Shown here piece after piece: positions 1,017-63,774 of a DNA stretch of 64,000 nucleotides (its first letter is position 1; each line of letters opens with the position of its first letter). The position numbers and the translations under genes are program-made. The notes under the pieces are model-generated. The model was not told the origin of the DNA, ran no database searches, and saw only the letters and a list, made by a program, of their open reading frames with translations. The stretch comes from Lytechinus pictus (Eukaryota), in assembly GCF_037042905.1 (NCBI RefSeq), contig NC_087246.1:17360001-17424000 (forward strand), in the 5' to 3' direction.

Positions 1017-4000
1017 ATGGCAGGAAATTCGCAGCATCAAAGTCAAGGTATGTAGACCTATAGACTATCTAAATCCTGAGATAAAAAACAGTTGATTATT
1101 TGGTAAATATTTGAAGCGTGGATTTGTATTTTAATTCTGTGATAGAAAATTACCGCGGGTTGGAATGGAACATCAAATTCAGACTTCACTTCAGTCCCGC
1201 TTATGCAACTTGGTGTCTTCAATTCATGGACATGGTCCTTATATTCATTTATAAAATCAGGGTGACCAGACGTCCCGTATTTCCCACTCTAGGCGACACC
1301 CCAATACTTACCCGTGCAAATAAACTGGGACTCCACTCACGCGCATTTGGGCCGCCCTAGCTTAGAACTAAGCTTTGTTTTACTAAAAAATAAATCTTGT
1401 AATGATTCAATAAATGTTACTTAATAAATTAGTACTGTTAAATCGGTACTCACCGGTTCTTTTCTTGAATTTTCTGGCAATTTCCCACGCTTCTGGCTTC
1501 AATTCTGCGGCTGTTCCTGTCGCGGTAGACAACTACATATGCAACTTTATTTATAAATAGAGCGCCCCTTACGATAGTTGTTAAGAACGCGGCCAAATTG
1601 TTAGGTTTTTTGCACTGTGTCCAAGGCGTTTTTATTTTGTTTGATTTTTTATTTTTAATAAATATTTTGTTAAATAGCGATTTTTACGTCAAATATTAAA
1701 TTCATATCACAAAATATTTTTAATTGTAGAAATATATATAATATCATGCAATTATTCATTCTATATATATTTTATAATAAAATTTATAATTGTTGCGGTC
1801 TTTAAAAAAGGATAGTCGATTGATCAGGTGATGACCACACGTATCACGTGATCTGAAAATCAGCTTCATACCGCTTTGATCGCACTCGACGGTGACCGGA
1901 CTGACTGCCAAAAAAAGATCTAAAAATGACTCAAATGTAAGTTTCCCTTTATTTTATTAAATTCAAATTAGGAATAGGAATATATTTAATGGGCAATCTT
2001 TTAATAAATGATAAACAAACGAGGACAAAACTCATATTTTGGGAGTAATATCATACTTGGGTGCAGGAAACAGTACGTTTAGAAGTTCTAACCTGTTTTT
2101 AACGCATTGTCGCCTATGAGGTCCATACATGTTAATGTTTGGACCTCATTGGTACTAGGAGTGGTATTTCCCGGGATCGTCCCGTATTTTGCTCCTATGT
2201 CCCGGCGTCCCGACAAACCCTTCCCGGGACGCCTATTTGTCCTGTATTTCAGAATATTGAACTAATGCGGGGGGCCGATAACATAAATAACCATACTCCA
2301 TAGTATACACTCATTATAACTTACACACACTTCACACCGGGAGGAAATCCTACCTTTATCGTGTAATCTTGATCAAGCACGGCTCTCAGTACGTCTGCTA
2401 CGACTGGGGGTTTTGGTATGGATTCTTGTTCTTGTGACTGTGATTGCGTGTGTGGACCGGTACTGTATTGTGCTGCATTGGTGATGGGTGCAAATGTTCC
2501 CGCCGCTGCCGATGATCGTGTGACGTTGTCTTTTGTCTGCTTAACTACTATTAATCCCCTAACAGTATACTTCCCCCCACCCTAAAAAAAATTGGCATGA
2601 TTGGGGGCCTATTTCTTATACAACTTGACATAACTTAACATAAGGTATAACTCAACCTAACATAAGATAACCCTAAACATAAAATATTCATCAATGTAAT
2701 TCATTTGTTTTTCCTCTTTTTTTCTTGATCATATCTTTTTCTTTCCTTTCTTTTTTTTCTTATTCTTTGATCTCTTTTTCTCTTTCTGTTCTTGTTTCGT
2801 TTTCTGTTTCTTTTCTCCTTGATTCTGTTTTCGTCTGTGATTTTTTTTTCTTTTTCTTTTCTTCTTCTGACTTCTGTAATCTTTTTATTTTCTCTTGTGA
2901 TCTTTTTCTTTTCTTTCTCTGTGATCTTTTTTTGTGATCTTTTTCTTTTCTTATTTGTTCATGAACATAAATATAACACAAATATATACATCAATATATA
3001 CATCATTACCAAATACATCATTACCAAATCATACAAAATATTCTTACCCTGTCTCTGCCTTGATAAAAATTAAATAAGCTCACTACGCTTATCTATGTAC
3101 CTTAGTAAAAGAAACAAATATATTTTTATCAATATATAAACAATTATCATTGAGAAATACAGATTATTCCTTCTCATATGATAAACTGTAGAGTTCAATT
3201 TGCAATGAGTAACTATGTATTTCATTTTGTATAGAATATATTATATTTCATTCTTCCAATGCGGTATATACAAATTCAATACAAATATTTATCATTCAAT
3301 AAATATATATTATTTCTGCTCATACTTTTGTGTTCAAATTGCAAAGAATAACCATGTGAACAAAAAAGTGTATACCATATTCCATTCCCTCAATGTGCTA
3401 TATACAAATTCAATACACAACCATCATTTGAGAAATATAGATTATTCCTACGCATATGATAAACTCTATAGAGTTCAAATTGCAATGAGTAAACTATGTA
3501 TTTTATTGTTGTATAGAATATATTATATTTCATTCTTCCAATGCCGTATATACAAATTCAATACACAAACATTTGTCAATTGATAAATATAGAGAAATGC
3601 TGCTCATACAATTTACTCTATTGAAATTGCAAAAAGTAGATAAGACCCCAAGAATATGAACAACTATCATGTCATGGTTGCATTGCAATAGTGTATCATG
3701 AGAAGAGACCAGAGGCTCTCTGGAATCGGACACTTCCTCTACTTTATTCATTGTAGATGAGAAGGAAAAAAATAATTATACTCTAGTTAACTTCAATCAA
3801 AGGATTTTTTTTACAAAGATTCAATGAACAGTAGTAGTAGTAGACAAGTAGATAAGCTAAGAATGTTATGGCATGCATAGTTAAATACACATATTTATAT
3901 TATTCCAAATTATTATTAATTTGTAATATATGAAATAGATAGTTTAAGGATCTGAATTCAAATTAGCATTGACCTTGTTAAGTGATCTACGAGCTTCCTC

Positions 4001-7000
4001 TTCCTTGTATTGTGCAGTTCGTATTTCTAGCTGAAGGATTTCAACTCTTAATTCATGCTCACGTTTGAGCCATGCATGCTCTTCTCTTGCCAATTCAATC
4101 ATTACTTCTTGTGCTGGACTGAGACTTTTTTTCTTTGTGTTTGGTTCCAGCTGTTCTAGATAGTGCAAGCTTCTCTTGGCAGATGGTCTGGTTTCTGTAT
4201 TCCTTGAGGGGTTTGTTGGTTGCAGAGTAGATCCAGGTCCAGTAGGCTTGGTAATTTTTCTTGGAAGAATAGGTGGAATTGAAGTCTCTCTTGTTCCAGA
4301 GGTTGACGGTGTTAAGTCAGTTAGGGAAGATGGGACATTCTGTTGCTGGTTGCTTGTCCCAGAGGTTGATGGTTGATGGTTGACGGTTAAGTCTTGGGAA
4401 GCCAAATTCGTAGATTGGACGGTCTGTTGGTGGTAGCTTGCTCCAGAGGTTGATGGTTGATGGTTGACGATTAAGTCTAGGGATGCAAAATTTGCAGATT
4501 GGACATTCTTTTGCTGGTAGCTCAATTCACCATCCTCTAGATCTGTGGAGCAATCAACTTCCAGGGGCATGACGGGAGTACATGATCGTTGTTGGGGTGT
4601 GCAGGACTTTTATCCTGTAATCTTGATCAAGCACGGCTCTCAGTACGTCTGCTACGACTGGGGGTTTTGGTATGGAGTCTTGTTCTTGTGACTGTGATTG
4701 CGTGTGTAGTGTGTGGACCGGTACTGTATTGTGCTGCATTGGTGATGGGTGCAAATGTTCCCGCCGGTGCCGATGATCGTGTGACGTTGTCTATTGTCTG
4801 CTTAACTACTATTAATCCCCTAACACTATAGAACAAAATAATATAGTTAAATACATTTAAAAGTGACAAATTTTCATCAAATAATCAACAGATGACGAAG
4901 CAGCGACAACAATAAAATCGATAAACTTTTGCAAGTTCTTCTGTGATTTTCTTGCTAACGTAACCCAATACATTGCAAACGAACTGGCCTCCTGCTTGTG
5001 TGGTTACTAGCTAGGCATGTAGGATAAGAGCAGGTTCTCAATGGTGCGAACAATCTCACATGATTCAATTTTTCAATTCAATTCAATTCATTTATTTTCT
5101 CTTTCAATCTTTTTACATTTACAATGATAGTTCAATATACATATTTACAAAATATAACATTTAAATCATTTTTTTATAATACAATAATACCATGAAATCG
5201 AAAGGGAAGGAGACCAACTAAAAAGCAGAGCTTGTAGGGTGAAGGCCCCCTTTTATAAGTAAATTTTATGAATTAAAAATAAGATAAAATAAAGAAATAA
5301 ACAATATATATATATATAATGAATAAAAAAAATAAAAATAAAATTAAATAATAATAAAAATAAATGATTCAGTATACACTGTATACAGAGATCATAAAAC
5401 GATTAAACATATATACAAAGAGAAATTAATAAACACATTTACATATTAAGTTCTGAATTACATTACTTTGGGAAAAAACGATAATCTAATATGAATTCAG
5501 AAGATATTTTTTAAGTTTTCCTTTGAAATTGTGTATTGAATTACATTGTATAATATCCTTTGAAAAAGAATTCCATAATTTTGGACCAGTAAAAACAAAT
5601 GTCTTCTGTGCAAACGATGTTCTATTCAGAGGTAAATGAAAGGAACTCGCCTGGCGAGTGAAGTGTTTATGAATTGTATCATTTTTTATAAACATATTAT
5701 TAAAAGGTAACGGTAATTGTTTATTGATAAACTTGAACATTAACTGTCCGAGTTGAAAAGAATATAAATCTTTAATCTTCAAGACTTTATTTCTCAAAAA
5801 CAGAATATTTGTATGTGCCCTGAATTCTGCATGACTAATAATACGAATCACTCTTTTTTGTAAAATAAAAAGTCTATTAATTTGATAATTCGCTGCATTA
5901 CCCCACGCAACAACTCCGTAATTCAAGTAAGGTAAAATTAACGTTGAATACAATGATAACAAAATATAATGGGGTAAGAAGTAACTTAATTTTCTAATGA
6001 CACCGATGTTGCGTGCAATGATTTTACAAATATTATCAATATGTGCTTTCCAAGAAAGTTTGTCGTCAATGATCAGTCCCAAAAATTTAGTAGATCGCAC
6101 TCTTTGAATGACAATATCATTTAAAATTACATCTTTTGGTACACTCGTAATCTTGTTGCTAAATAGCATGTAGCTAGTTTTTGTCTCACCTGCATAGCAG
6201 AGTGAGACTATAGGCGCCGCTTTTCCGACGGCGGCGGCGACGGCGGCGGCGACGGCGACGGCGGCGGCGACGGCGGCGGCGGCGTCAACACCAAATCTTA
6301 ACCTGAGGTTAAGTTTTTGAAATGACAGCATAACTTAGAAAGTATATGTACCTAGTTCATGAAACTTGGCCATAAGGTTAATCAAGTATTACTGAACATC
6401 CTGCCTGAGTTTCATGTCACATGACCAAGGTCAAAGGTCATTTAGGGTCAATGAACTTAGACCATGTTGGGGGAATCAACATCAAAATCTTAACCTAAGG
6501 TTAAGTTTTTGAAATGTCATCATAACTTAGAAAATATATGGACCTAGTTCATGAAACTTATACATAAGGTTAATCAAGTATCACTGAACATCCTGCATGA
6601 GTTTCACGTCACATGACCAAGGTCAAAGGTCATTTAGGGTCAATGAACTTTGGCCAAATTGGGGGTATCTGTTGAATTACCATCATAACTTTGAAAGTTT
6701 ATGGATCTGATTCATGAAACTTGGACATAATAGTAATCAAGTATTACTGAACATTCTGTGCAAGTTTCAGGTCACATGATCAAGGTCAAAGGTCATTTAG
6801 GGTCAATGAACTTTGGCCAAATTGGGGTATTTGTTGAATTACAGCCATAAATTTGAAAGTGTGTTGGTCTAGTTCATAAAACTTGGACATAATAGTAATC
6901 AAGTATCACTGAACATCCTGTGCGAGTTTCAGGTCACATGATCAAGGTCAAAGGTCATGTAAGGTCAAAGAACTTTGGCCACGTTGGGGGTATTTGTTGA

Positions 7001-10000
7001 ATTGCCATCATATCTCTATAAGTGTATTGGTCTAGTTCATAAAACGTGGAAATACGAGTAACCAAGTATCACTGAACATCTTGCGCGAGTTATAGTAGTT
7101 TTCAAAATCAGCACTGCTGCTATATTGAATCGCGTGATGCAGGTGAGACGGCCAGAGGCATTCCACTTGTTTCTAGGTTAAGAGAGAGTTTGTTAGCTGT
7201 TATCCAATTAGACACATTTTTTAGTTCGTCATTGAATATTTGCGTCAATTGCTCTGGGTCGGGGTGCGACAGAAATATATTAGAGTCATCAGCGAAAAGT
7301 ATAAATTGGAGCAATCTAGATGACATATCAATATCATTTATATAAGTAATGAACAAAAGTGGGCCAAGAATGCTGCCCTGTGGAACTCCACAAAGGACAG
7401 GTTTACGTTCAGAAATATTACAATCAAGTGAAACGAACTGTGAACGCCCGGTTAGATAATTCTTGAACCACTTTAGTGGTTCCCCTCTTATTCCATAATG
7501 AGAAAGTTTATAAAGGAGAATGTTATGATCAACTGTATCGAATGCTTTTGAAAAATCTAAAAACAAACCAATCGTATTCGAAGACTTGTCATAAGCTTTG
7601 GCAACTGTTTGAACCAAAGAAAGTATTGCGTGGGAAGTGCTACTCTTTTCCCGGAAACCAAATTGAGTATCGGATAGGATGTTGTGCTTTTTAAAAAAAC
7701 ATATGGTTCGTATGTGAACCAATTTTTCAAGAATTTTAGATAAGTTTGTAAGCAATGAAATCGGTCTGTAATTACTTGCTAAAGAACTATCACCTTTTTT
7801 GAAGACTGGTATTATCTTAGAAATTTTCATTGATTTTGGAATATTTCCCGATGATAATGACAAATTGAATATATAAATAAGAGGGTCAATTATATAATTC
7901 ATAGTTTTTAGTAAAAGGTTGTTATCAATGTTATCAAATCCTGCACTTTTATTTGATTTTAGGCTAGATATAATTTTAATTATCTCCTGTGCGTTCGTAG
8001 GAGAGAAAAACATAGAACTTTGATTTCTATCCCCCAGATATTGATGAAATGAATGGGAGTTTGTTGGTATACTTCTAGAGAGCTTAAATCCAACTTGTGA
8101 AAAGTAATTGTTGAAAATATTTGCCATCTGAACTTTATCTTCAATAATAGAATCATTATGCATAAGCTTAGTTATCTTTGAAAACTTTGGTCCATTATTG
8201 ATGGTAGAATTGATCAATTTCCATGTTTTTTTAAGATCATTCTTGCATTGATTAAATTGATCATGGTAATATGCCTTTTTAGCAGTACGGATGACCCCTG
8301 TAAGTGTATTCTTATAATTAGTATATTGGCTCCGAGTATTCTCAGTTAATCTTGATATATATTTATAGTATAATCGATTTTTTCTATTTATCGAACGAAG
8401 AATTGAATTTGTTATCCAAGGTAGTCTGGGTGATCTTTTATAATTTTTGGACTTGGGCTTTGCAAAAGGAATATTTTCATTAACATGACTCATGAAGATA
8501 TCAATAAATGTTTCGTAGGACTTGTCAACACATTCTGTACTAAATACATCATCCCAAGATTCTTCTTCTAAACTCTGTTTCAAACGAGATATATTTATAT
8601 CACTATACACACGCCTCTTAGATACGTAATCGGGAAGTTTGTTTGGCTGATATTGATTAGAACAATACATGAAAATTGGGAAATGATCAGACATGTCTGA
8701 AATAATTATACCAGCTTTAAATTCTGAACGTATATTGGAGAAAAAATTGTCAATCAGAGTTGCGGAAGTATTAGTGATTCTAGTGGGTCGAGAAATAAGT
8801 GGCAAAAAGGAGGCAGAAAGGAATGTCTCTAAAAAGTCATTTGCAAAAATATTAGTATCACTCGCTAACAGGTCATAGTTAAAGTCTCCCATTATGATAC
8901 ATCTTTTGTTTTGAACAGAATGATAATGTAGTAAATTATTTAAAGTGTCTAGAAAATCAGCACTATTGCTGCGAGGAGGCTTATAAACAACTCCCAATAC
9001 AGTTTTTCTGTTATCACGATCACTAATTTCAATAAATAAAGTTTCTGCAGTTTCATTCATTAAATTCATGTCTTCAATAATAACATACTCAAATTGACTC
9101 GGCACAAAAATTGCAACACCACCACCAATTTTATCAACACGATTATTTGTAAGTATATCATAACCTGGGAGTGCATTCATATTAATATATTTATCTGACA
9201 GCCATGTCTCAGTTAAACCTATTACTGTATTTTGGGGAACACCTGAGTTATCTAAAAATAAACGAAATTGTTCAAAATTCTTGTTAAGGCTTCTGATATT
9301 TAGATGCAAAATAGACAAGCAGGAAGAAGGTAAACCTTTGAAAATGTTTTTGGCTGAAGCCTGAGTGTAGTAGTTTGAGGATATGACACTCGAAGCCCCA
9401 TCATTTGGATCTAAATCAATTTTAAGTTCATCATTGTTAGCTCCAATATCATTAATAACATCATTGGAATCATTGGAAATGTTCGTAATCATATCAAAGT
9501 CAATCATTATTTACATAAAACACCAGTATAATATAAACATATATGCGTAAGAGAGTTTTACTTAATTTTGTTCAGATCCTCTTCTCGATGAATTGCAACC
9601 GGTGGAACATTCGGGCTCTTCCTCACCAGAATGGTGCCATTCACTGTCCATAAGAACATGTATCCCGCCTTCTTTCTCTCGTCATTTGCCTTCTTCAGGA
9701 GAGACTTCTTAGCTGGGGCTAGATTTTCGTTGAGAAACACCTTTCCTTCATCTCTTGAGAATCCCAGTTGACGGGTTGATGTTTCCCTCAGTTTTTTCCG
9801 GCCTGAGTATAGAGTATCCCTCATCCTTCTGGTCGTGAATCTAACGATGATTGGTCTGGCTGGACCACCTTCTCTTCTCTGACCAAGTCGATGTGTCACA
9901 TCAATGTCGTCGTTGGATACCTCTGGTGAAATTTTCTTCATGACGTGAAGGACAGCCTCCCTCACATTCTCACCTTCCTTCTCAGGAACACCTGCCACTT

Positions 10001-48470: not shown

Positions 48471-51400
48471 ATGCAAAGAGGGGGAAGATTGGGTCATTGC
48501 ATACCATCTAGTGAAGTCCAGCCAGGACAAGAACCTTGCCTTGATTCTTCCACCCAACTCCAGAAAATTGTCAATGAAACGGTGCTACATCAAGAGCGTT
48601 CTGCTGGCCCACAAAGACAAATCGATCCTGTTAGGTACTCCAACCTTTCTCCAAGGGCAGTCAACCAAACTGGGGAAGTGTTATTTGGAGGTAGTCCGTC
48701 AGTTCATGCAGTTGAAGTCCATGGTCAACACCTACAGGTTGTGGCTCCAGAGCTCATCTCAGTTGCAGATTACTTGGCCCATTCAGCTGCTACTAGATCC
48801 ATTGGAGCATCACAGAGGCAGCTTGTACAACCTGACAGGGGTTCATTGGCATTTTCTGGTGAAACAATCTACCATACACCCAGTGGTCCTCCCTCCGTGG
48901 ATTCTGTAGTCCAATCAGCATTCCCAGGTAGTGGCCTGTGGTCAGGTTGCTCCCCTGGTTTACACGGGGCCAGTCCTACGACATCATCCCTTCCCTTCAG
49001 CCCTTCACGGACAAACCCTTTTCATTCCAGTCTTACTAAACCCGTCAAATTAAACATGAGTGCATCAATCACCAATCAACCACCCTCTGAGGTGGTTGAC
49101 CTCCGACGAAAAACTCTTGAAGAAAAGAGAAAGACATTGAAAGAAGTGCAAAACTCTTATGTGGATAAACTCACAGAGTTGTATTTCCTTCAGCAAAGCC
49201 ACAACATGATGGACTATGTGATATGGAAGAAGAAGCAACCAGATCCTCACTTGGCATCGTATTTGAAAAATAGACAGCTTGAAGAGCGTCCTTTCCAGGA
49301 CCTTAATACTGAGGTTTGTTTTGCTCTGAATTACCAATTAATGTTATGTTAGATGGAAGTATGTATGTCTCCAATTCATAGACTCCAATGATTTTGGTTT
49401 GTCTCTATCTCGTGTTTTTGAGACTTGAAAAATCAGTAATAAAACTGATATAGGTTCACTCAATGTTTTACACTTTGCATTACATGTAAAACAAAATTAC
49501 TGTTGTAAACAACTCATGAAATAGTATACTGGTATACAATGGCTTATCAAATGCAGATTTGTTTAGTTGTGGTAAATTTGAATAAGAAAGGAGTTTCACT
49601 ATTGACATAAATATAAGAAGCAAAGACTCATTCTATCTTTAACAGGTGTATTGGTGTTCTATTGAAATGTTTCATTAGATCATACGTGTATGATTTGCAA
49701 TTATTGATTTAGATATAAGAAATAATTGTGAATGTTTAAATGTCTCATATTCTTATTTCATGCAATGCATTCCATGCCATCAGGTTAAAACCGGTACAGC
49801 ATCCAGTAGCAAAGCCTCTCTCATCACTCTGGCAACTACATCTGCCCAGGAGGCGGCACCCCAACTGAAGAAACGCAGCGATGGGGATGATAGCAGCCGG
49901 AAAGGTCAGTTAGGATCATCAGGAGGATTGTCTGCAGCTTTGGCCAGTGAATCTAGGAAACGCAGCAGCAGTCAGGCAGGTCTTGACGAGGCTGGCGAAG
50001 GGCACTCTGTTAAACTCAAAGTTGGTGGGTCAGAAGTGTCCACTAAGAGTGAATCATCCTCTATAGGTATGCCTTGCTCTTAATCATTGATTACTGTGAG
50101 CTTGTAATTAGCATTATGAGGTGAATTGATAAGAATTGTTGGGGAGTAGGTGAGATAACAAGGAGTTGTGTGAGTTGCATGGAAAAGGGTCTGAAAATAG
50201 GTTCCCATGGTTGGAATGAAAATCAGAGAAGTTATAAAATCCTGCCATTAGCAAGTTTCATGCATGTTCATTGAACTTGATAAAACAATCCATATTTTGT
50301 AAGTTTCATTTAAAATGCCTTTCCAATTTTGAAAAAAACAAATGAAAGATTAGTCATAGCCAATATGGAACAGAATCTCAAATATCTGAACAATCAAACA
50401 CATATTGCCTTTCAAATAATGGTCAATTGTTTGTGGTACACATTTTTTATCCTTGCTCAGCATTGGTTTAATTTTTTACATTTTAGCTTCATCAAGAGCA
50501 TTGCCTTCAATAACTGTGATCCCTGCTACACCAACACCTGGTAACATGTCTGGTATTGAGGAAGCACCATTGGCCACTAAGATAACTGCTGATACTGTTG
50601 ATGTCAAAGGTTCAGTTGGTAAGTTACAAGGTCTCATTTAATCAGGGTTGTTGATTTTTTTGATTTTTAAAAAAAAGAAAAAAAATCGGATTATTTTGAT
50701 TTAAATCGGATTTTTATGATTTAAATCAGATTTTTAGAAAAATAATGGTTACACTTAACAAGTTTTAAACTATATTTAAACTGTTTTACACCAATAATAG
50801 TGGTCAAGTAGTCTTTTGAACATTGTGTATTGTACTATTTGACACAATAATCCACTTATATACAGGTAATTTTTTTTTTTTTTTTTTTTTATTTGCATTA
50901 TAGAGAGGTACATTTTATGGAAGCCCAAGTAATGTTATGTATTATGTATACATTTAAACTCTTGAAATTTTTATATCAGTCAGTTCAAAACATCCGAAGT
51001 GTTACTCCAATGCATGAAGTACTCAAAGAACTTGAGAATTTCCAACAAAATTGACATTATTAAAGGCCTGTAGGATAAGCACCACTGTCCACCACATCAT
51101 TGATGTGCTGTTTTTCAAACTATTACATGAACAAGCAAGCACAGCAGTTGTATTGCTGCATACAGTAACACTTGCCCAGCAACTTTCCCATTTTTAAATT
51201 CTTACTTATTAAGTATACATGTGTACTTTAAAATTGTGTAATTGAATGTATGGGTATTGATAAGAAAATACACAAGCATGCAAAAATACATGTAATTCTT
51301 ATCAAATGTACACATATGCCTTCAACTTAAGTAATTGAAAGAATGGGTATTAATAGTAACAAGAAGGAGGTACATACAAGTAGTTCAGCTGTTTTGTAAA

Positions 51401-54400
51401 AGTATCCAAGTTGTGGACTTTGAGCACCTTTGTAGATTTTATATATTATTTTATTGAAGATTTAACAGTTTGGTGTACATACAGAGAGTTATTTATCATT
51501 ACTTCGTTAGAAACTTGTTGTTTTCATCAGTTTTGCTTGTTTTACAATTTGAAAATAAAACAGTGGTGTTAAATCAGACTCCATGAGGGTGTATCATTCT
51601 TTTAAAGTATCTCTAAAGCATGTGGAACAGAAATGAAAATGATTACATTGAAAGTATCTGTTAAGAAGAAGAGAAAATAGAGAAAACTAATTTTTTTCAT
51701 AAAAGTTGATTTAAATCAGTGATTTTTTTGAAAAAAATCAAGTGATTTAAATCATGATTTAAATCGACATGATTTAAATCAAACAACCCTGCATTTAATC
51801 CAATGTCACTTAAGAAATCATGTAGGCATGTGAATAGAATATATGAAGATAATAATTTAGCTATTGACAATTTTGAGGCTTTCAGACTAGAGTCGCCAGT
51901 TCTGCTTATTGATAGTGTTCATGGTGCTTACAGCCTCGGAAATCAATTCCTAGTCTATATCCTCAGACAGATGTCTTATACATTGTCTGGCACCAGACTT
52001 GGGACATGGCTTGGTGCCAATTGTAACTTCTGTGTAGCTGCTCAAGTATCTGCATTTATAACTCCCCATCAAGGCATACTACTTGAGTACAGTATATTTG
52101 GATCATGTTTTGATTTTTCCTTAATAATGTTCCATGCTTCCCTACTTTGATGTTGGGTGACATTTCTTATATTTTGATTCTTGAATGATAATTTTCCAGG
52201 TCTTGCTTCGCCCATGCGTCGCAATGTAAGTGCTCCATCATCATTAGGTCAGATGACGAGTAAAAGCCTGGTCAAATCTCACCTTCCTACTGGGTTATCA
52301 AGAGAAAGGCAAGGAACCAGACAAGGAGCCCTCTCAGCAGTCTATGACTACACTATCGGTTCGCAAGAAATGATAGTAGAAAGGGCAAAACAGGTAACTA
52401 TTTTCTCAGTATAGATGTTCCACAGTATTCCTTGTATTTTTTGTGAGCATATGTTTAGTCCTGGATAGGAGCACTCATACTTTTTTCTGTTTTCAGTGGG
52501 CTCTATTTTCATGCATTCCATGTTGGTATTTGGAACTGTAATACATGGGCTTGTGGTGGATGTAGCAAATGAGAGAGAGGGACACATATTGGTTCCTGAT
52601 CAGACTGAATAATCAGTGCATGCAGCAATGATCTTGATTTGTCATAGCTATTTAGTGATTGATCGCCTTGGAAAAGAAATGAAACAGAAATTAATTATGA
52701 AGTTAATTGATATCACTGACATTGTCAATGTACAATGTCTTCGGAGTGGCAGGGGTTGTCAAGCTATCCTGTGCTTGTTGACTCGTACAACATTCCGTAG
52801 AACAAATCAGAATCTTCTCATTCTCAGGTTGTGCTGTTTAGTGCGGAACTTGAATTATAGCATTCATACAATCCCAGTTTGGTAAAATTTACATCAGCGC
52901 TCTTCGGGTTAAACTCGTTGCCTATTTGTTTGCTGTAATCTGTGTAAAAAATTATACATGTACTGTGTGCAGAGTTCTTGGTGAAAATTTCTACACGAAA
53001 TGCTCCCTAGGGGATGTTCCATCAATTATTGTCACCTGACAAATATTCGTGGATTTGATTGGCTGGGAAATACAGGTGTCTTACTGTAACTATCAAAGAA
53101 TTACAGCTTGCCACTTTAAAAATATTGTCCCTGGAAATGCACCTTCTTTTGAAAATTTATGTGATTTATGCATTGTGTGATTCAGCTGAAATGAGTGTTT
53201 CTAAGATCTTGGGGTCCACTTGCACGTTAATCTGTGAACTCACTTGTTTGCCAATTCTTCTCTCGTGTATAACAGGAAGCCCAGGTGATGCAGAGAATAG
53301 CAGAGTTAAGAAGGGATGGGCTGTGGTCAGCTAAGCGTCTTCCAAGAGTCCAGGAGCCTCCGAGGCACAAGTCACATTGGGATTACCTACTAGAAGAGAT
53401 GCAATGGCTTGCTACAGATTTTGCTCAGGAGAGAAGATGGAAGAAAAATGCTGCTAGAAAGGTATGCAGGGTCAGCCTGAACCAGATATTATACCAACTT
53501 TTGGTAGGATATAAGACTGAATTTGTTCAGTTCTTGTATTGGGTATCATTTGATATAGTTTCTATTTATGTAATTATTATTATTAAGTTCCATTTCATTC
53601 AATATGGTTTTATTCTATATTAATTAGTTGGTGAACATGCCCTAAAAGAATTATAATATTATTAGTTTGAGGCTTTCAGACTAGAGTCGCCAGTTCTGCT
53701 TATTGATAGTGTTCATGGTGCTTACAGCCTCAGACATCAACTCCTAGTCTATATCCTCAGACATATGTCTTATACATTGTCTGGCACCAGACTCGGGACA
53801 AATTATTTTCATGCAAATTTCTCTTTGAATTGAAGATGTGTGGTGTTTTGAAAGAACGAGGATGTGCTGCAATATTTCACTTCTGATGATTAAGAAGGTG
53901 TGATGCTCATGTAAAGATACTATTGTTCAGTAAGGGAATACACATGCTAATTGAGAAAAGGCACCTTTTACAGTTCTAAATATTTTTGCCACATATTTGA
54001 TAAACGCATGCACATGTTGGTACCAATAATGCATGTATCTCTTTCGTTTAATTGATTGTAAGAAAAAAGGGTTGTAACAGAATGCCTCGCTCTGAAGCAC
54101 AAAGTGCTGTGTCTGGAATCAAATCCATGACTTTCACATGCTTAGTCAGGCACCTTAGACCACTCAGCATAGGCTCCTCCATTGGTTCTTTGCCTTTGTT
54201 GGTAATCTTTAAAATAAACCAAGGTCAGGTGTATTAGTCATGTCAACAAAGATTTTGATGATCCAACCTGAATTCTTTGAGCTATCTCAGGCTAATATAT
54301 TTGATACAGTGAGAAATGCATAATATCTCCTCACTCTTTATTTCACAGCTGGCTCGAGCTGTAGCTAAACATCACCAGGAGCAAGAGGCTAAGGAAATGA

Positions 54401-57400
54401 AAGCTGGCAAGGAGGAGGTGCAGAAACTGAAGAGGATAGCAGGGAACATTGCCAAAGAAATCAAAGCATTTTGGGCTAATATTGAAAAGGTACAATTCAC
54501 TTTATTGTTGGTCATCCCATTGCGAGATGTGTGTAGTTTGGCTCTATAGGACTAGTTTTGTTTGATCTTTTGTAGATTGTTATTTCAGTGCTAGTCAGTA
54601 TTCTTCATTTTAAATGCAGACACTCAAATGTCAGAACAATAGAATGGCCTAGTGATAATAGGGATTCTGGAACCTCTATTGTTCTCTCCTGTTTGGGGTA
54701 AAGTTGAATGTAACTTGCAAATTAATACTGGCAGGGTCTGTAATTTTTGGCTCCTGGAGATGGTAGTAGACTATGCCATATTCGACTTGAGGGTGTGATT
54801 AGTATCAGTCTACACACTCTGCTTCGAGATGTGGCAAGATAAACATCCGGGTCATGACTGCTTCTGTACATGCTCAGTGTTCTTGTAGCATATACAGCAA
54901 TGGATCATGGCACATATGAAATTTGATAGGTTCATAATATAAGGAACACTCCTACTGAGTGTCCATACTGTATCATTGTTAACCCTATCTAGGCCGGGGG
55001 GGGGGGGGTGCCTCCGAGGCCCCACCCTCAATGAGTCGCGCAATATTTTCGCCGCGCAAAATTTTTTTGGCCGCGCTGCTCGCTGACTTTTTACTTTCAA
55101 GTCTTGCGCAACTTTTCTTAAGACCGATTTTGTGTTAACCGGGTACGCGGTTCCGAAATTCGCAACGTTATGTAAGTGCATGTCAGACCAAAAATTGCTC
55201 AAAAACTTGATTTCGTGTACAAAGCCAATGTAAATTGTGTTTTCAACCAAAAATCATAAATGTATCATTATTTTTAGTTTTGCTGGTCTAAATCTATGTA
55301 TTTTATGCTGTTTATGATCTTAGAAGAGTTCCCAACGAATTGCATTGAAAAAACAATGAAAAACAGAGGGTCCAAAAAAAATGAAATACATAAGAAATTG
55401 CAAAGAACAATATAATACATAAGAAATTGATCTGATATCACAATTTTTTTCATGTAAACTTGCTAAGAACACCACAAAGAGTTTCTATGCCAAAAATTAG
55501 AACATTTGGAGCTTTATTTATGAAGTTAGAGGATAAAGTATTATTTCGCATACTAATTACGCATAAATTAGCATAATTACTTAATAACAATTCGCATGAA
55601 ATAAATTACTCTACAATTTTGTAGATTATATCCCAGACAACCTGCATGCCAATTTTCGGCGCAAATCGCGTGGTCGATGGCTGAGATCTCAAGGGGGGGA
55701 CTGGGAGGCCCCCCCCCCCCCCCCCCCCCCCGTCCATATGAACTCTCAAAATACCCCGGCCTAGATAGGGTTAAACCTCAGAGGAAGCAACACATGCAAC
55801 TTCTGAGACTTGCTAAATATATTTGACTTTGGTCAATGAGGTTTGATCTTTTTAAAACAAATTAAAACTTCCTCATCAAAGTGAATTGTATTATCTTTCC
55901 TCACTGGAAACAAAGATTTATTCTAGGCAGTAGTCTCTCTTGTCACTTTTTACCATTGCTCATTATTTTCTTAATATTTGACATTGGTTTACATATTATA
56001 GTTTAATTGCCTTTTTCAGCAGTGTTAAATTGGTTTTAAGGAAGTTGCATTCATCCATCATCAAGTATGATGCATGATTTAATTCTATTATATGCATATG
56101 TAACTTATTATCTTTACATGTAGGTTGTGCAATATAAACAGCAGAGTAGGTTAGACGAGCGAAGGAAGAAGGCATTGGATCTTCAGCTGGATTTCATCGT
56201 TGGTCAGACTGAGAAGTATTCATCATGGTTGACTGAAGGACTTAATACCAGCACTGCAGGATCGTCCGCTCAGGGATCCTCAGTGTCGAGTCCCAGGTCT
56301 GATCGCATGGCAGATGGTAAGTTGAAAAATGTCTTTCATTTATATCTATTCTTGGTGATCATTCAAGTAGAGAATTGTGTACGTTTTCTCATGATGCACA
56401 TTTACATGTTAGCGGTACAGAAAATTTGCACAAGAAATTTATTGGATGACTACTTTACCTATGTGATGTGGAAATTGGAAGTGGTGAAATTTTCACTACC
56501 CCCCTCCCTCGTTACACACATGCACTTAGTAACAATTTGGTTACTTTAAATCTGACTGTAATTTTTATACTTTTGATTTTTTTTTTAAATTAAAGAGTAA
56601 ACTCTTCTGTACTATGATTCAATTAATGATAAACAATTGTAGGAACTTCAAAATTGTGTTTTAATTAGGGACAACCAGCATTCTTTATATCATAGAGAAG
56701 TTGTAGCCCTTGTTCTGTATGTTCCAAATATTCACAACCAACATTCCTTGTTTTGATATTTCCGCTCCAGATGTGGAATTTGAACCTCGGGGAGATGACA
56801 GTGATGATGACGAGGAGACGATAGACGTTGAGGAGAAGCAGGCTGCCAAGGCAGGTGAGGTTTCTGGTGTGAGTGAGATTGAACAGCTGCAGAGGGAAAG
56901 TGAGCTTCCAATAGAAGAATTGCTGAGCTCTCTACAGGAGGCACAGAAGGAGGAAGAGAAGAAGAGCTCAGGGAAAAAGGCGGAAGAGGACCCTTCCAAG
57001 AAACGGGAAGGGACACAGTCTACTGCCTCTCTGAAAGAAGTGGTGAGTCCACAAACAATGTCATAACCCTTCTCATTACAGGAAGCTGCCTTTTTACCAA
57101 AGCCACCAAGCCTTTTTCCATACGCATGCACAGAATTATTTCAATATTGTTTTGAAACTACCCTTTATATTCATACTTGCAATTTTTAATTTGAAATCCA
57201 TCATGTGCCTCCCCCCCCCCCCAAAAAAAAATGCCTGTCAGTCTGTCACATAGATGTTAAATTGATAAATATTAGTCAAACCATTTTTCCTCTTGCATAT
57301 AATCAACAAAAAATTTAACATCAATCCTCTTGTTGAATTGTTTTAAATCTTACTTATATTTGATTTCTAATCCCATTTCATGGCCCGTGTGACCAAAGCA

Positions 57401-60400
57401 CAAGTATACTACCAAAAGAAGAGAGAAATATATTCATACGATTCCATTTTGTCCACAGACTGCACCTGAATCAAAGATCACAGAGAGTACAGATGACAAA
57501 GACTTTGAATTATCAGCAGATGAAGACGATGAATTTGGTAAGTTTTTGTTCTGTCTACACTTTCATTGCCATCCAATGTTGGTTGAGGGGTGTTTAATGA
57601 AGCATCTTATGATTTTCATTGACAAATTGGTTATGAATCTATCAGATGCATGGTTTTAAGTAGCTCATCAAAAGTTAGTTAAAATCACTGACTGTTTGTT
57701 TCGTGAAATGCTATTAAGTTCTTGAAATTTTTTCCTCTAGTTAAAAAGTTCACTGAGGAATAATAGACTTCATAAGGATTGATTTGAGGAAGTAATTTCA
57801 AGCAATTCTTAGCCATTCTCATCCAAAATATCAATCAAATACTTGGGCAGGATTACTCATCAATGACTTTGTAGGGGTTGAATATTTATATAATATTGAC
57901 TGGTCTTGAGGGGAACATCAAATATATTGCCAGCAAAAGAATCATATTGGCCCGAGTCTTTAGACGAGGGCAATATGGGTCTTTAAAGGGCAATATATTT
58001 GATGTTCCCCGAAAGAAGGGCAGTCAATATTTTTAATATCATCCAAATCAGATATCTAGAGCAAAAATCATGATAACAGTGTTATCTTTTAACCCTAACT
58101 AGGCCGGGCTTTTTTGGCTGTTCTGTGGCCGGGGGGGGGTTGATTCAACCCCCCCCTGAGATCTCGGCTGTCGATCGCGCGAGGGCCGCAAAAATTTGCA
58201 CGCTGGTAGTGTGCGATGTAATCTACAAGGCTGTATGGTAAAATTTTCCAAAATAATGAGATTTTATTTTATATGAATTAATTATGCTAATTAATGCATA
58301 AATCATACTTTTTGCTCTAATTCACTAAATAAAGCTCCTAGAATGCTAATTTTTGGTAAAAATATTCTTTGTAGCATTCTTAACAATTGCAATTGAAAAA
58401 AACTTCGGTTTGGAAATCAATTTCTTATGTATTTTATTGTTTTATGAATTTCTTATGTATTTCTTTGTTTTTCAACCTTTTGTTTTTCTTTATTTTTTTC
58501 ACCAGATTTATTGCACAACCTTTTTGAAGCATAATTATGCTAAAATCAATTGCTTTCAGCTGTTTAAAGTAAAAATAATCATATCTTTATGAATAAGATG
58601 AGAAAACTCAATTTGCATTGACTTTGTACACAAAATCACGTTTTGGAACAATTTTTGGTCTGACATGCACTTACAAAATGTTGCGTAATTTCGGAACCGC
58701 GTACCCGGGCGTCGTAAATTTTGTCTCTAAAGATGCGCGAGACCTAAAAGTATAAACTCTGCGAGTGGCGCGGTCAAAGAATTTCGCGCGGCGAAATGAT
58801 CGCAGAAAATGTAGAGGGGGGGGTTGATTCAACCCCCCCCCGGCCATTTTAGGGTTAAGAATAGAGTTCTGTTGTGTCATGATAATATCAGTGTCTAGGC
58901 TCTGCACTTTACCATTATGACGTAATTGCAAGCGCCCAGATCCAGCGTTGTCTTTATTATGACGTATATCGTTGGTGCGCGGAACATTATGAAGCCTATC
59001 ACTTCATTCGCATCCTCAAAGGCCCGGATGTGAGACCAGGGAAAATACAAAGGTATATTTTGCGTCGTCTCTGCATGCAAAGTCAATACGCGCATTGAGA
59101 CCGAGGAAAATACAAACAATATACCTATCCCTTCCTGATAATAATAAAATACAGGGAAATACGGTTTTGTAAATGACCAGCTCAGATGTCTGATACGGGT
59201 GATAATTACTAATAAGTGTGTCATATATGATTGAAAACCTTCAATAATATAATCGAGGCTTTTGAATATCAAGTTTTTTTCTACAGAGTAGGGACATATC
59301 AGACTAATCTACCTTTGAAATGATTCTTTCTTTTATGCACTTAGATGATGATGAGAAGACCCTTGATGAGCAAGAAGAAAAGGAAGGTGATATTGATCAC
59401 AAGGCTGAACTGAATGATCTAGCTGCTGATGGGGAAATCCCAATTGAAGAACTTTTGAAGCAATACCAAGGAGCTTACGCTGAGGACTTTGATTTCTCTG
59501 ATGCAGATGAAGATGAGGAGAGTGAGGAAGATGAAGAGTCATCACAAGGTCAGTAGTTTGTTATTGGGTTACTTATTTTAAATGGGAAGGGGGTAGAATT
59601 TCTCATGTCCAAAATTATCGGCAGAGTGGAGAATTGATTCCAGTTTAGGTCAGCTTATTGGAAAGTCTTTTCACTTAAGATAATTTCTATCAATAACAAA
59701 GGAATGATGTGTATTGACAATAATTCACATTGAAAATGTGAAAAATAAAAGTTATTGAAAAATTTGAAACATTGCTGTTATAATCACGTGCATTGTTAAG
59801 TGTTGGAGTGGCAGGGGTTGTCAAGCTATCCTGTGCTTGTACAACTCGTACAACATTCCGTATATCAGATCAGAATCTTCTCATTCTCAGGTTGTGCTGT
59901 TTAGTGCAGAACTTGAATTATAGCATTCTAACACATTTTAAGTATCTATCATGTTCTCCACTTTCACGTACGGAAATCTCCCAGGCAATGTGTTCTTGAA
60001 AGCCTTTCAAAACCACATACCTTGTGAACTGCTTTCTGTTATCTTTGATCATTTAGTTTATCGGATAGATTTGGTATGTTGGTATGTCTGCATTAAGTTT
60101 TCTGATTTTTATTTTAAATTCATTATTTGAAGCAATCTACCCAGTGCATCATTTGGCAGCCAAGGAACTGGAGAGCAATTTAATCATTCTAACCATGATG
60201 ATTGTCCTGCTGCAAACCTATCGGTGCACTGTGAAGACTGTTGGAAATAGCCATGAGTCCAAATAAAAATGACAATGGTGGAAAGATTAATATTTTGTAT
60301 TTTTTCAACAACAAAATATAGAATCCTCATCTGAAGATGAAGAGGTAGATGAGGAGGATGCTGAACAGGACCAGGATGAGCTCAAGGATGTTGGAATGGA

Positions 60401-63400: not shown

Positions 63401-63639
63401 CTGATTCATGTAGGAAAGCTCTTTGGAAAAGGTAATAATAGGTCTTTCCTTTGCCTTGTAGGTTAAAACCAAAGTGCCCTTCTTGCTTCGTCACACCCTA
63501 CGTGAATACCAGCATATAGGACTGGACTGGTTGGTGACCATGCTGGAGAAGAAACTCAATGGTATCCTGGCAGATGAGATGGGTTTGGGCAAGACTATCC
63601 AAACCATTGCATTATTAAGCCATCTTGCCTGTGAAGAAG
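48471..63639 (+). CDS. SRCAP: Domino/SRCAP/EP400-family SWR1-type chromatin-remodelling ATPase, 5' part (continues beyond window)
   Basis: 13 phase-consistent GT-AG exons: 48471-49313, 49784-50066, 50487-50618, 52200-52393, 53276-53461, 54349-54489, 56124-56316, 56771-57042, 57459-57537, 59345-59548, 60322-60455, 62149-62247, 63462-63639. HSA domain ([37 protein letters not shown]), acidic linkers, [22 protein letters not shown]2 motif I ([30 protein letters not shown]). Confidence 0.95.
50643..51791. mobile_element. hAT-like MITE with perfect 8-bp TSD
   Basis: CATTTAAT|CAGGGTTG...CAACCCTG|CATTTAAT; GATTTAAATC subterminal repeats. Confidence 0.85.
51873..52009 (+). ncRNA. Box H/ACA snoRNA, SNORA3(ACA3)-like, copy 1
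   Basis: Hairpin GAGGCT..AGCCTC, H box AAATCA 51940-45, second hairpin, ACA 52004-06. Pockets CAGACTAGAGTC/GCTTA and TATCC/CACC match 28S UGAGC-UU-GACUCUAGUCUG and GGUG-UA-GGAUA. Confidence 0.85.
52742..52873 (+). ncRNA. Box H/ACA snoRNA predicted to guide two 18S rRNA sites, copy 1
   Basis: Hairpin CGGAGTG..CATTCCG, H box AGAACA 52799-804, ACA 52868-70. Pockets GGCAGG/CGTA and CTCATTC/ATTATAG lie 15 and 14 nt from the boxes. Confidence 0.85.
53667..53803 (+). ncRNA. Box H/ACA snoRNA, SNORA3-like, copy 2
   Basis: Near-identical to 51873-52009, with similarity ending right after ACA (53798-800). H box ACATCA 53734-39. Confidence 0.85.
54080..54175 (-). mobile_element. Degenerate tRNA-derived SINE
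   Basis: Minus strand GCTGAGTGGTCTAAGGTGCCTGAC...GATTTGATTCC: decayed A/B boxes, no intact cloverleaf. Confidence 0.5.
54774..54917 (+). ncRNA. Box H/ACA snoRNA, 3' pocket SNORA1(ACA1)-like (28S)
   Basis: TGCCATAT..ATGTGGCA hairpin, H box AGATAA 54837-42, GTCATGA..TCATGGC hairpin, ACA 54912-14. Pocket CTGCTT/CAATG, 14 nt from ACA, matches 28S CAUUG-UG-AAGCAG. Confidence 0.75.
54983..55770 (-). mobile_element. piggyBac-like MITE (TTAA TSD, CCCT...AGGG), inverted relative to the two downstream relatives
   Basis: TTAA|CCCTATCTAGGCCGGGG...CCCCGGCCTAGATAGGG|TTAA. Confidence 0.85.
57882..59215. mobile_element. Possible Crypton-type non-autonomous element hosting a piggyBac-like MITE
   Basis: Internal long hairpin (GGGGAACATCAAATATATTGCC / GGCAATATATTTGATGTTCCCC) with GCCCGAG..CGAGGGC core. 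No TIR/TSD seen; boundaries approximate. Confidence 0.4.
58093..58854 (+). mobile_element. piggyBac-like MITE
   Basis: TTAA|CCCTAA...TTAGGG|TTAA; interior related to 54983-55770 (reverse) and 60546-61256. Confidence 0.85.
59804..59936 (+). ncRNA. Box H/ACA snoRNA (18S-guide family), copy 2
   Basis: Near-identical to 52742-52873; H box ATATCA 59862-67, ACA 59931-33; both pockets unchanged. Confidence 0.85.
60546..61256 (+). mobile_element. piggyBac-like MITE
   Basis: TTAA|CCCTAA...TTAGGG|TTAA; right TTAA (61257-60) shared with the next element. Confidence 0.85.
61261..61855 (+). mobile_element. Kolobok-like MITE, copy A
   Basis: TTAA|AGGGGAATCCAACC...GGCTGGATTCCCCT|TTAA. Confidence 0.85.
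62558..63154 (+). mobile_element. Kolobok-like MITE, copy B (direct repeat of copy A)
   Basis: Same termini and TTAA flanks; highly similar interior. Confidence 0.85.
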
Positions 63640-63774
63640 GTAGGCTTTTATTCACTTATTCTATTTCTTTAGGTTTATTATTTGATTCTGCCATCCCATA
63701 GACTTTATCAGATTTAAAAGCATAGATAGGGTTATACATCCTGTTCAGTATTATGACTACTATTTAGGCCTGGG

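Follow-up and report, generated by a model that had tools for sequence, protein, structure and literature searches.

What are the two nearly alike elements of about 130 nt that lie within introns of one sea urchin gene, and on which bases of the ribosome would they act? The question concerns a 64,000-nt stretch of Lytechinus pictus DNA (positions 17,360,001 to 17,424,000 of the forward strand of contig NC_087246.1, RefSeq assembly GCF_037042905.1), hereafter the window. A first-pass annotation had read the elements as copies of a dual-guide box H/ACA RNA aimed at two uridines of 18S ribosomal RNA (rRNA). We favor, with some reservation, the conclusion that they are paralogous, intron-encoded copies of a small nucleolar RNA (snoRNA) of the box H/ACA class that guides modification of U515 and U1628 in the host's 18S rRNA. 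The gene class is an ordinary one and the predicted targets are unusual; no new mechanism is involved. Every sequence-level hallmark of a box H/ACA pseudouridylation guide was observed, and the copies make up a real, uncatalogued H/ACA snoRNA family with two members in this genome.

The copies, whose coordinates had been given correctly from the start, and their boxes are as follows.

52742 to 52873, + strand: copy A, predicted H/ACA snoRNA of 132 nt in an 883-nt intron (covariance-model score 163 bits)
52799 to 52804, + strand: H box of copy A, AGAACA
52868 to 52870, + strand: ACA box of copy A; similarity between the copies stops 3 nt later
59804 to 59936, + strand: copy B, predicted H/ACA snoRNA of 133 nt (fold z-score -3.7, covariance-model score 169 bits)
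59862 to 59867, + strand: H box of copy B, AUAUCA
59931 to 59933, + strand: ACA box of copy B; similarity between the copies stops 3 nt later

The two copies are 92% identical (122 of 133 aligned positions), a likeness that runs from the base of the first hairpin's stem to 3 nt past the ACA triplet. Flanks of 100-200 nt on each side reach 58-66% identity under the same scoring, for which shuffled sequences give a mean of 61%. The mature 3' end is a prediction, as the 3 nt between the ACA and the end of the RNA are placed by this similarity boundary. A search of the whole 812 Mb assembly returned these two copies and no others. A loose genome-wide pattern for the 3' pocket gave 244 matches against 199 in the control, which is chance level, and further diverged paralogues are therefore neither findable nor excludable in that way.

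Folding of both copies and of each half with RNAfold gives the hairpin-hinge-hairpin-tail arrangement. The hinge carries an H box that fits ANANNA in both copies and differs between them only at N positions. Each copy has UAUCCUGU and UGUUUAGU as its terminal loops. No CAB box (UGAG), the mark of a small Cajal body-specific RNA (scaRNA), was found in either terminal loop of either copy. Thirteen columns differ between the copies; no pairing in a stem is lost through them, and every box A and guide base is left intact. One lies at the foot of hairpin 1 (C-G to U.G), three in the first upper stem, on its 3' strand (U-A, G-C and U-A in place of U.G, G.U and a gap), two at N positions of the H box, one in the hinge, one in the second upper stem (U.G to U-A), and five between the last stem and the ACA or past the ACA. 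The probability that 13 differences would avoid all 29 guide and box positions by chance is about 0.03. The alignment thus bears out the early observation that H-box filler and stems vary and the pockets do not. In a three-sequence structural alignment 98.9% of cells were paired, compared with 29-47% when the partners were slid. It is very probable that the element is an H/ACA snoRNA.

Targets were sought in the host's own rDNA, taken from an unplaced array (L015) in which Rfam placed 18S at 527-2343, 5.8S at 2734-2889 and 28S at 3240-7003. Each of these rRNAs was scanned with the two pockets, which were set in several registers. The guide strings, GGCAGG...CGTA in the 5' pocket and CTCATTC...ATTATAG in the 3' pocket, are identical in the two copies and lie at the positions below.

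52749 to 52753, + strand: copy A, 5' pocket, 5' strand GCAGG (plus G52748, the top of the lower stem), predicted to pair with 18S CCUGC(C) 3' of U1628
52784 to 52790, + strand: copy A, 5' pocket, 3' strand CGUACAA, of which CGUA would pair with 18S UACG 5' of U1628
52814 to 52823, + strand: copy A, 3' pocket, 5' strand CUUCUCAUUC, of which CUCAUUC (52817-52823) would pair with 18S GAAUGAG 3' of U515
52854 to 52861, + strand: copy A, 3' pocket, 3' strand AUUAUAGC, of which AUUAUAG would pair with 18S CUGUAAU (one G-U) 5' of U515
59810 to 59815, + strand: copy B, 5' hairpin, guide strand GGCAGG
59847 to 59850, + strand: copy B, 3' guide strand of the 5' hairpin, CGUA
59880 to 59886, + strand: copy B, 3' hairpin, guide strand CUCAUUC
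59917 to 59923, + strand: copy B, 3' hairpin, guide strand AUUAUAG

Both 18S target strings proposed at first pass are present in the array. The best match of the 3' pocket is host 18S U515 (CUGUAAU[UG]GAAUGAG, 7+7 bp with one G-U), a score reached by none of 2000 composition-preserving shuffles and by 1 of 2000 random pockets. The best match of the 5' pocket is U1628 (UACG[UC]CCUGCC, 4+6 Watson-Crick bp), reached by 22 of 2000 shuffles and 27 of 2000 random pockets. Both pockets leave the canonical two target bases unpaired, and the first guide base 3' of the upper stem falls 14 nt before the ACA in the 3' hairpin and 15 nt before the H box in the 5' hairpin. The original GGCAGG/CGTA pocket stood as to its strings and its target. 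Its sixth pair did not stand as drawn, for it uses G7, which belongs to the top pair of the lower stem, so the open pocket of the free RNA gives 5+4 bp. Action of the 3' guide on U515 is likely; action of the 5' guide on U1628 is predicted with less assurance, as a better than even prospect, and that both assignments hold is somewhat less probable again. Fold, boxes, the 14-15 nt spacing, the sense position within introns and the host 18S targets all fit a dual-guide H/ACA RNA as first described.

A U514 register for the 3' pocket (6+8 bp, two G-U) was rejected as it requires a non-canonical pocket, and the other 5' targets considered (18S U1445, 28S U2507 and 28S U2538) were weaker and rich in G-U. 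As for the rDNA itself, arrays occur on many unplaced contigs (C112, C115, C135, C170 and others) with a unit of about 14.3-16.3 kb. Spacing of the 18S on contig C112 is irregular (30.9, 17.1 and 14.3 kb), and single 18S-like target strings are also found on the chromosome-scale contigs C13 and C18.

Positions in other organisms were assigned from two anchors in the Arabidopsis modification table, one being At U580 = Hs Um627 = Sc Um578, the other At C1641 = Hs Cm1703 = Sc Cm1639. U515 and U1628 sit 70 and 22 nt 5' of the Um627 and Cm1703 equivalents, respectively. By these offsets U515 corresponds to human U557, yeast U508 and Arabidopsis U510, and U1628 corresponds to human U1681, yeast U1617 and Arabidopsis U1619. 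The complete human mass-spectrometry map has no pseudouridine between Cm517 and psi572, nor between Am1678 and psi1692, and consequently U557 and U1681 are unmodified in human, in line with the first-pass annotation, which knew of no human pseudouridine at either site. Fragments in that map, AUUAmAG (1675-1680), AmAGU (1678-1681) and UCCACU-psi-UAAAm... (566-586), bear out the assigned human numbering and include two RNase products that confirm the further claim that the 5' guide suits a UUACG variant and not the human UUAAG. In the four-pair arm, the change from the urchin to the human sequence would cost the second pair. Human Am1678 (2'-O-methylated, 94%) is three positions 5' of U1681, a region that is modified by a different chemistry in vertebrates. 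The Arabidopsis table lists no pseudouridine at either equivalent, and neither is among the yeast equivalents tabulated there. Literature searches for psi557, psi1681, their yeast numbers and sea-urchin H/ACA snoRNAs found nothing. To our knowledge, yeast is unmodified at both equivalents.

Contigs from other species were fetched with the exon encoding the HSA domain of the host gene as a handle. In a close relative, the orthologue of copy A has 2 substitutions in 132 nt, compared with 17 substitutions and 5 indels in 353 nt of the upstream intron (Fisher p = 0.03 with indels counted). Both substitutions turn U.G into U-A, the state found in copy B. A marine-metagenome contig (L027), whose HSA exon is 84% identical to that of the urchin, holds, some 0.9 kb upstream of the exon, a homologue that spans 67-204 (cmsearch E = 6e-5). 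The homologue keeps the GGCAGG/CGUA guide, an H box (AAAACA) and the ACA. Its lower stem has been rebuilt, with G-C replaced by A-U (double compensatory) and with G.U replaced by G-C and G-C by G.U (single changes), and all six pairs of the GGCAGG arm fall within the open pocket. The pocket of its 3' hairpin (130-204) differs and predicts host 18S U955 (AGCAUU[UG]CCAAGAAUGU, 10+6 bp), by offset probably the conserved site known as psi1004 in human and psi948 in Arabidopsis. A guide seems to have been switched here inside a single RNA family.

The U515 guide was found in more distant company. In two contigs the same gene has a textbook H/ACA hairpin, 1.3 kb upstream of its HSA exon in L017 (8700-8765, fold z = -5.1) and 2.4 kb upstream in L016 (7590-7650). 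The pocket, ACUCAUUC/AUUACA, makes 8+6 Watson-Crick bp on U515, the stems are wholly unlike those of the urchin, and the box lies 14 nt (ACA, L017) or 13 nt (AUA, L016) downstream. These contigs come from taxa far removed from the urchin: the EP400_N exon shows 30% identity, and the HSA exon has the ERKWKK signature of the zebra-mussel protein. Single-hairpin RNAs or RNAs with an atypical 5' domain are both conceivable there. As L027 has the guide for U1628 and L016 and L017 have the one for U515, with changed stems around both, each guide is conserved independently of the other.

The distant hairpins were recovered only by a three-sequence model (R2) together with a guide scan; the covariance model built from the two copies had no match in the HSA-exon loci L016-L021 and L026. 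There was likewise no match in L028, a second contig from the sample that gave L017, and a metagenome scan with both 3'-pocket strands returned 4 matches, of which about 3 are expected by chance and none was confirmed by the model. The first two guide scans are excluded as evidence because G-U pairs are too easily found in AT-rich DNA. Guide-like stretches from loose scans at L019 918-996, L003 970-1013 and L021 2569-2674 were rejected as AT-rich or unstructured. A further multi-copy H/ACA-like family, CGAGUUGAGAG...GUAGUAAA...CGUAGAAxA..., was seen in introns of the same gene, downstream of the HSA exon, in the distant taxa, as weak R2 matches at the following places.

L016, 14653 to 14775: member of the multi-copy H/ACA-like family
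L017, 11086 to 11206: member of the same family
L017, 11564 to 11684: member of the same family
L017, 12047 to 12162: member of the same family

The gene in which the two urchin copies reside can be named from its predicted domains. Exons on the + strand encode EP400_N (48471-49352), HSA and SNF2 (63474-63644) domains according to Pfam, and these identify the host as an EP400/domino-type SWI2/SNF2 ATPase gene. The two exons around copy A are given here.

52199 to 52388, + strand: host exon upstream of copy A; RNA contigs are identical to the window and join it to 53271
53271 to 53461, + strand: host exon in which the HSA domain starts (splice joints; Pfam HSA)

The splice from 52388 to 53271 is present in RNA contigs and in reads, and copy A therefore lies in sense within an 883-nt intron. 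Copy B lies in sense in a later intron of the same gene, downstream of a coding stretch at about 59320-59556 in the list of open reading frames. The introns that flank that of copy A are occupied by full-length, sub-threshold matches to RF00334 (SNORA3/SNORA45) at 51880-52009 and 53674-53803 on the + strand (26 and 25 bits; E 0.09 and 0.16). With such neighbors the EP400/domino gene hosts a cluster of H/ACA snoRNAs. The neighbors share host gene, strand and class with the two-copy RNA; they match RF00334, whereas the two-copy RNA does not. Elsewhere around copy A, high-depth contigs that run into unrelated sequence with several mismatches cover two short intronic pieces, 52616-52663 and 53036-53070, which are probably fragments of a dispersed, transcribed repeat.

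Known systems offer close parallels. Like the canonical guides of vertebrates (SNORA) and yeast (snR), the urchin RNA is built as hairpin-H-hairpin-ACA over about 130 nt, is intronic in sense and carries two guides, each a bipartite pocket that leaves the target uridine and one base unpaired 14-15 nt from the box. It differs from them in having no Rfam 15 match and in predicted target uridines that are unmodified in human. A search of the window with Rfam 15 at the gathering score gave no match, and at E up to 10 no H/ACA model matched either copy; weak C/D and miRNA matches on the copies were dismissed as noise. Rfam H/ACA models found nothing in L027 or L017 either. The suggestion that the family is undescribed has accordingly survived its Rfam check, and the homologous guides in other invertebrate contigs give it further backing. 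The nearest precedent is found in Xenopus, where guides without a human counterpart (pug18S-124, -137, -211, -324 and -1279) likewise predict 18S pseudouridines absent from human rRNA, antisense elements are shuffled or switched between hairpins, and loss of a guide accompanies change of its rRNA target (PMC6984369), as may be compared with UUACG in urchin and UUAAG in human. None of the Xenopus sites named in the text of that paper is U557 or U1681, and the urchin belongs to an invertebrate lineage in which both sites are predictions.

Several observations weigh against the reading of the copies as a dual guide for U515 and U1628. The minimum-energy fold of the free RNA shuts part of both pockets. 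The 5' guide is short: the open pocket gives 9 bp, a tenth requires that the lower stem open at its top, and the shuffle control stands at only p ~0.01. In one run from the window's own species exon contigs are 100% identical to the window, and the sole unique intronic piece is a 154-nt contig over 52716-52868 with a depth of 2.3, which begins 26 nt upstream of the predicted 5' end; that run is only guessed to be RNA. In a related species contigs extend from the exon through the intron to just beyond the element, and the one run of raw RNA-seq reads searched for that species has zero reads over it. These expression data are compatible with a small RNA that is not polyadenylated and do not prove one. 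In L016 and L017 no convincing 5' hairpin or H box stands in front of the U515 hairpin, and L016 has AUA in place of ACA. L019-L021, which are closer kin of L016 and L017, lack the hairpin in the roughly 3.5 kb upstream of their HSA exon, and the two guides have so far been found together in one RNA in the urchin lineage only. Lastly, we know of no pseudouridine map for any of these organisms.

Of the other explanations, the one to be taken most seriously, although we think it unlikely, is that the snoRNA is genuine and one or both rRNA targets are wrong. The 5' hairpin could be an orphan, could act on a small nuclear RNA (snRNA), an mRNA or a pre-rRNA spacer, or could serve as a chaperone that modifies nothing. 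A 5' guide of 9-10 bp whose score controls match in 1-3% of trials leaves room for this, as does a target scan confined to 18S, 5.8S and 28S, and many vertebrate H/ACA RNAs are orphans, including the one in human EP400 discussed below. Against it, each guide is preserved in another species amid changing stems, both pockets are canonical in their two unpaired target bases and their distance from the box, and no shuffle equaled the U515 match. The particular case of a Cajal-body guide for snRNA is opposed by terminal loops that lack a CAB box. It is far less probable still that the copies yield no functional RNA and represent an intronic duplication, for example of a snoRNA retrocopy that has died or of a piece of a repeat, its complementarity to rRNA being fortuitous. 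Such an element would agree with expression data that do not prove a small RNA and with the ease with which AT-rich guide-like strings turn up across the genome. It would not be expected in just two copies in 812 Mb, with similarity that ends exactly at the predicted RNA ends, with every change compatible with the structure and with guides conserved in other taxa.

A third explanation would deny the family its novelty. The RNA might be the diverged orthologue of a named vertebrate family, SNORA49 or kin of SNORA3/45, whose guides have been switched. SNORA49 is an orphan H/ACA snoRNA located between exons 28 and 29 of EP400 in human and mouse (PMC12824223), and thus the same class of RNA in the orthologous chromatin-remodeler gene. 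Vertebrates offer documented cases in which antisense elements were shuffled between families and inside them (PMC6984369), and the 3' guide of the L027 homologue does differ. Yet SNORA49 occupies a different intron, far from the exons of the HSA domain, and no covariance-model similarity to it was detected; it has no validated rRNA target, in contrast to the two clear rRNA complementarities of the urchin RNA. At E up to 10 the copies, L027 and L017 were matched by none of the H/ACA models of Rfam (among them SNORA49 and SNORA3, if in release 15), although the same search does detect the SNORA3-like neighbors. We therefore regard this orthology as improbable.

If the copies are a dual guide for U515 and U1628, their action may be pictured by analogy with H/ACA ribonucleoproteins that have been studied. 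The RNA would be released from introns of the EP400/domino pre-mRNA and processed to a stable form, and each hairpin would bind dyskerin/Cbf5, Nop10, Nhp2 and Gar1. Through its internal loop a hairpin would pair with pre-18S rRNA on both sides of a single uridine. That uridine and its 3' neighbor would be left without partners at the upper stem's base, with 14-15 nt between them and the H or ACA box, and there the synthase would isomerize the uridine. The 3' hairpin would in this manner direct pseudouridine to U515, the equivalent of human U557, and the 5' hairpin to U1628, which answers to human U1681 and stands 22 nt 5' of the base equivalent to decoding-site Cm1703.

A more speculative proposal, which we consider doubtful, is that the guides mark old invertebrate 18S pseudouridines, at the equivalents of U557 and U1681, that were lost in vertebrates. 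If it were true, the guides would have resided in EP400/domino introns since before the urchin split from a distant, possibly lophotrochozoan, lineage and would have been reshuffled between hairpins since. The guide for U1681, in the neck region, would have been lost in vertebrates together with the C-to-A change in its target, where Am1678 is found instead.

Maps of rRNA pseudouridine cover very few animals and almost no marine invertebrates. The interest of this RNA lies in two predicted 18S pseudouridines, seemingly of a non-vertebrate kind, and in how long the guides have stayed with their host gene. It yields two precise and cheaply testable predictions for uridines that human rRNA leaves unmodified, one of which adjoins the decoding region, and it shows guide hairpins being kept, swapped or lost inside one long-lived host gene. 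If confirmed, it would provide a new family for the annotation of echinoderm snoRNAs and a case of lineage-specific ribosome modification.

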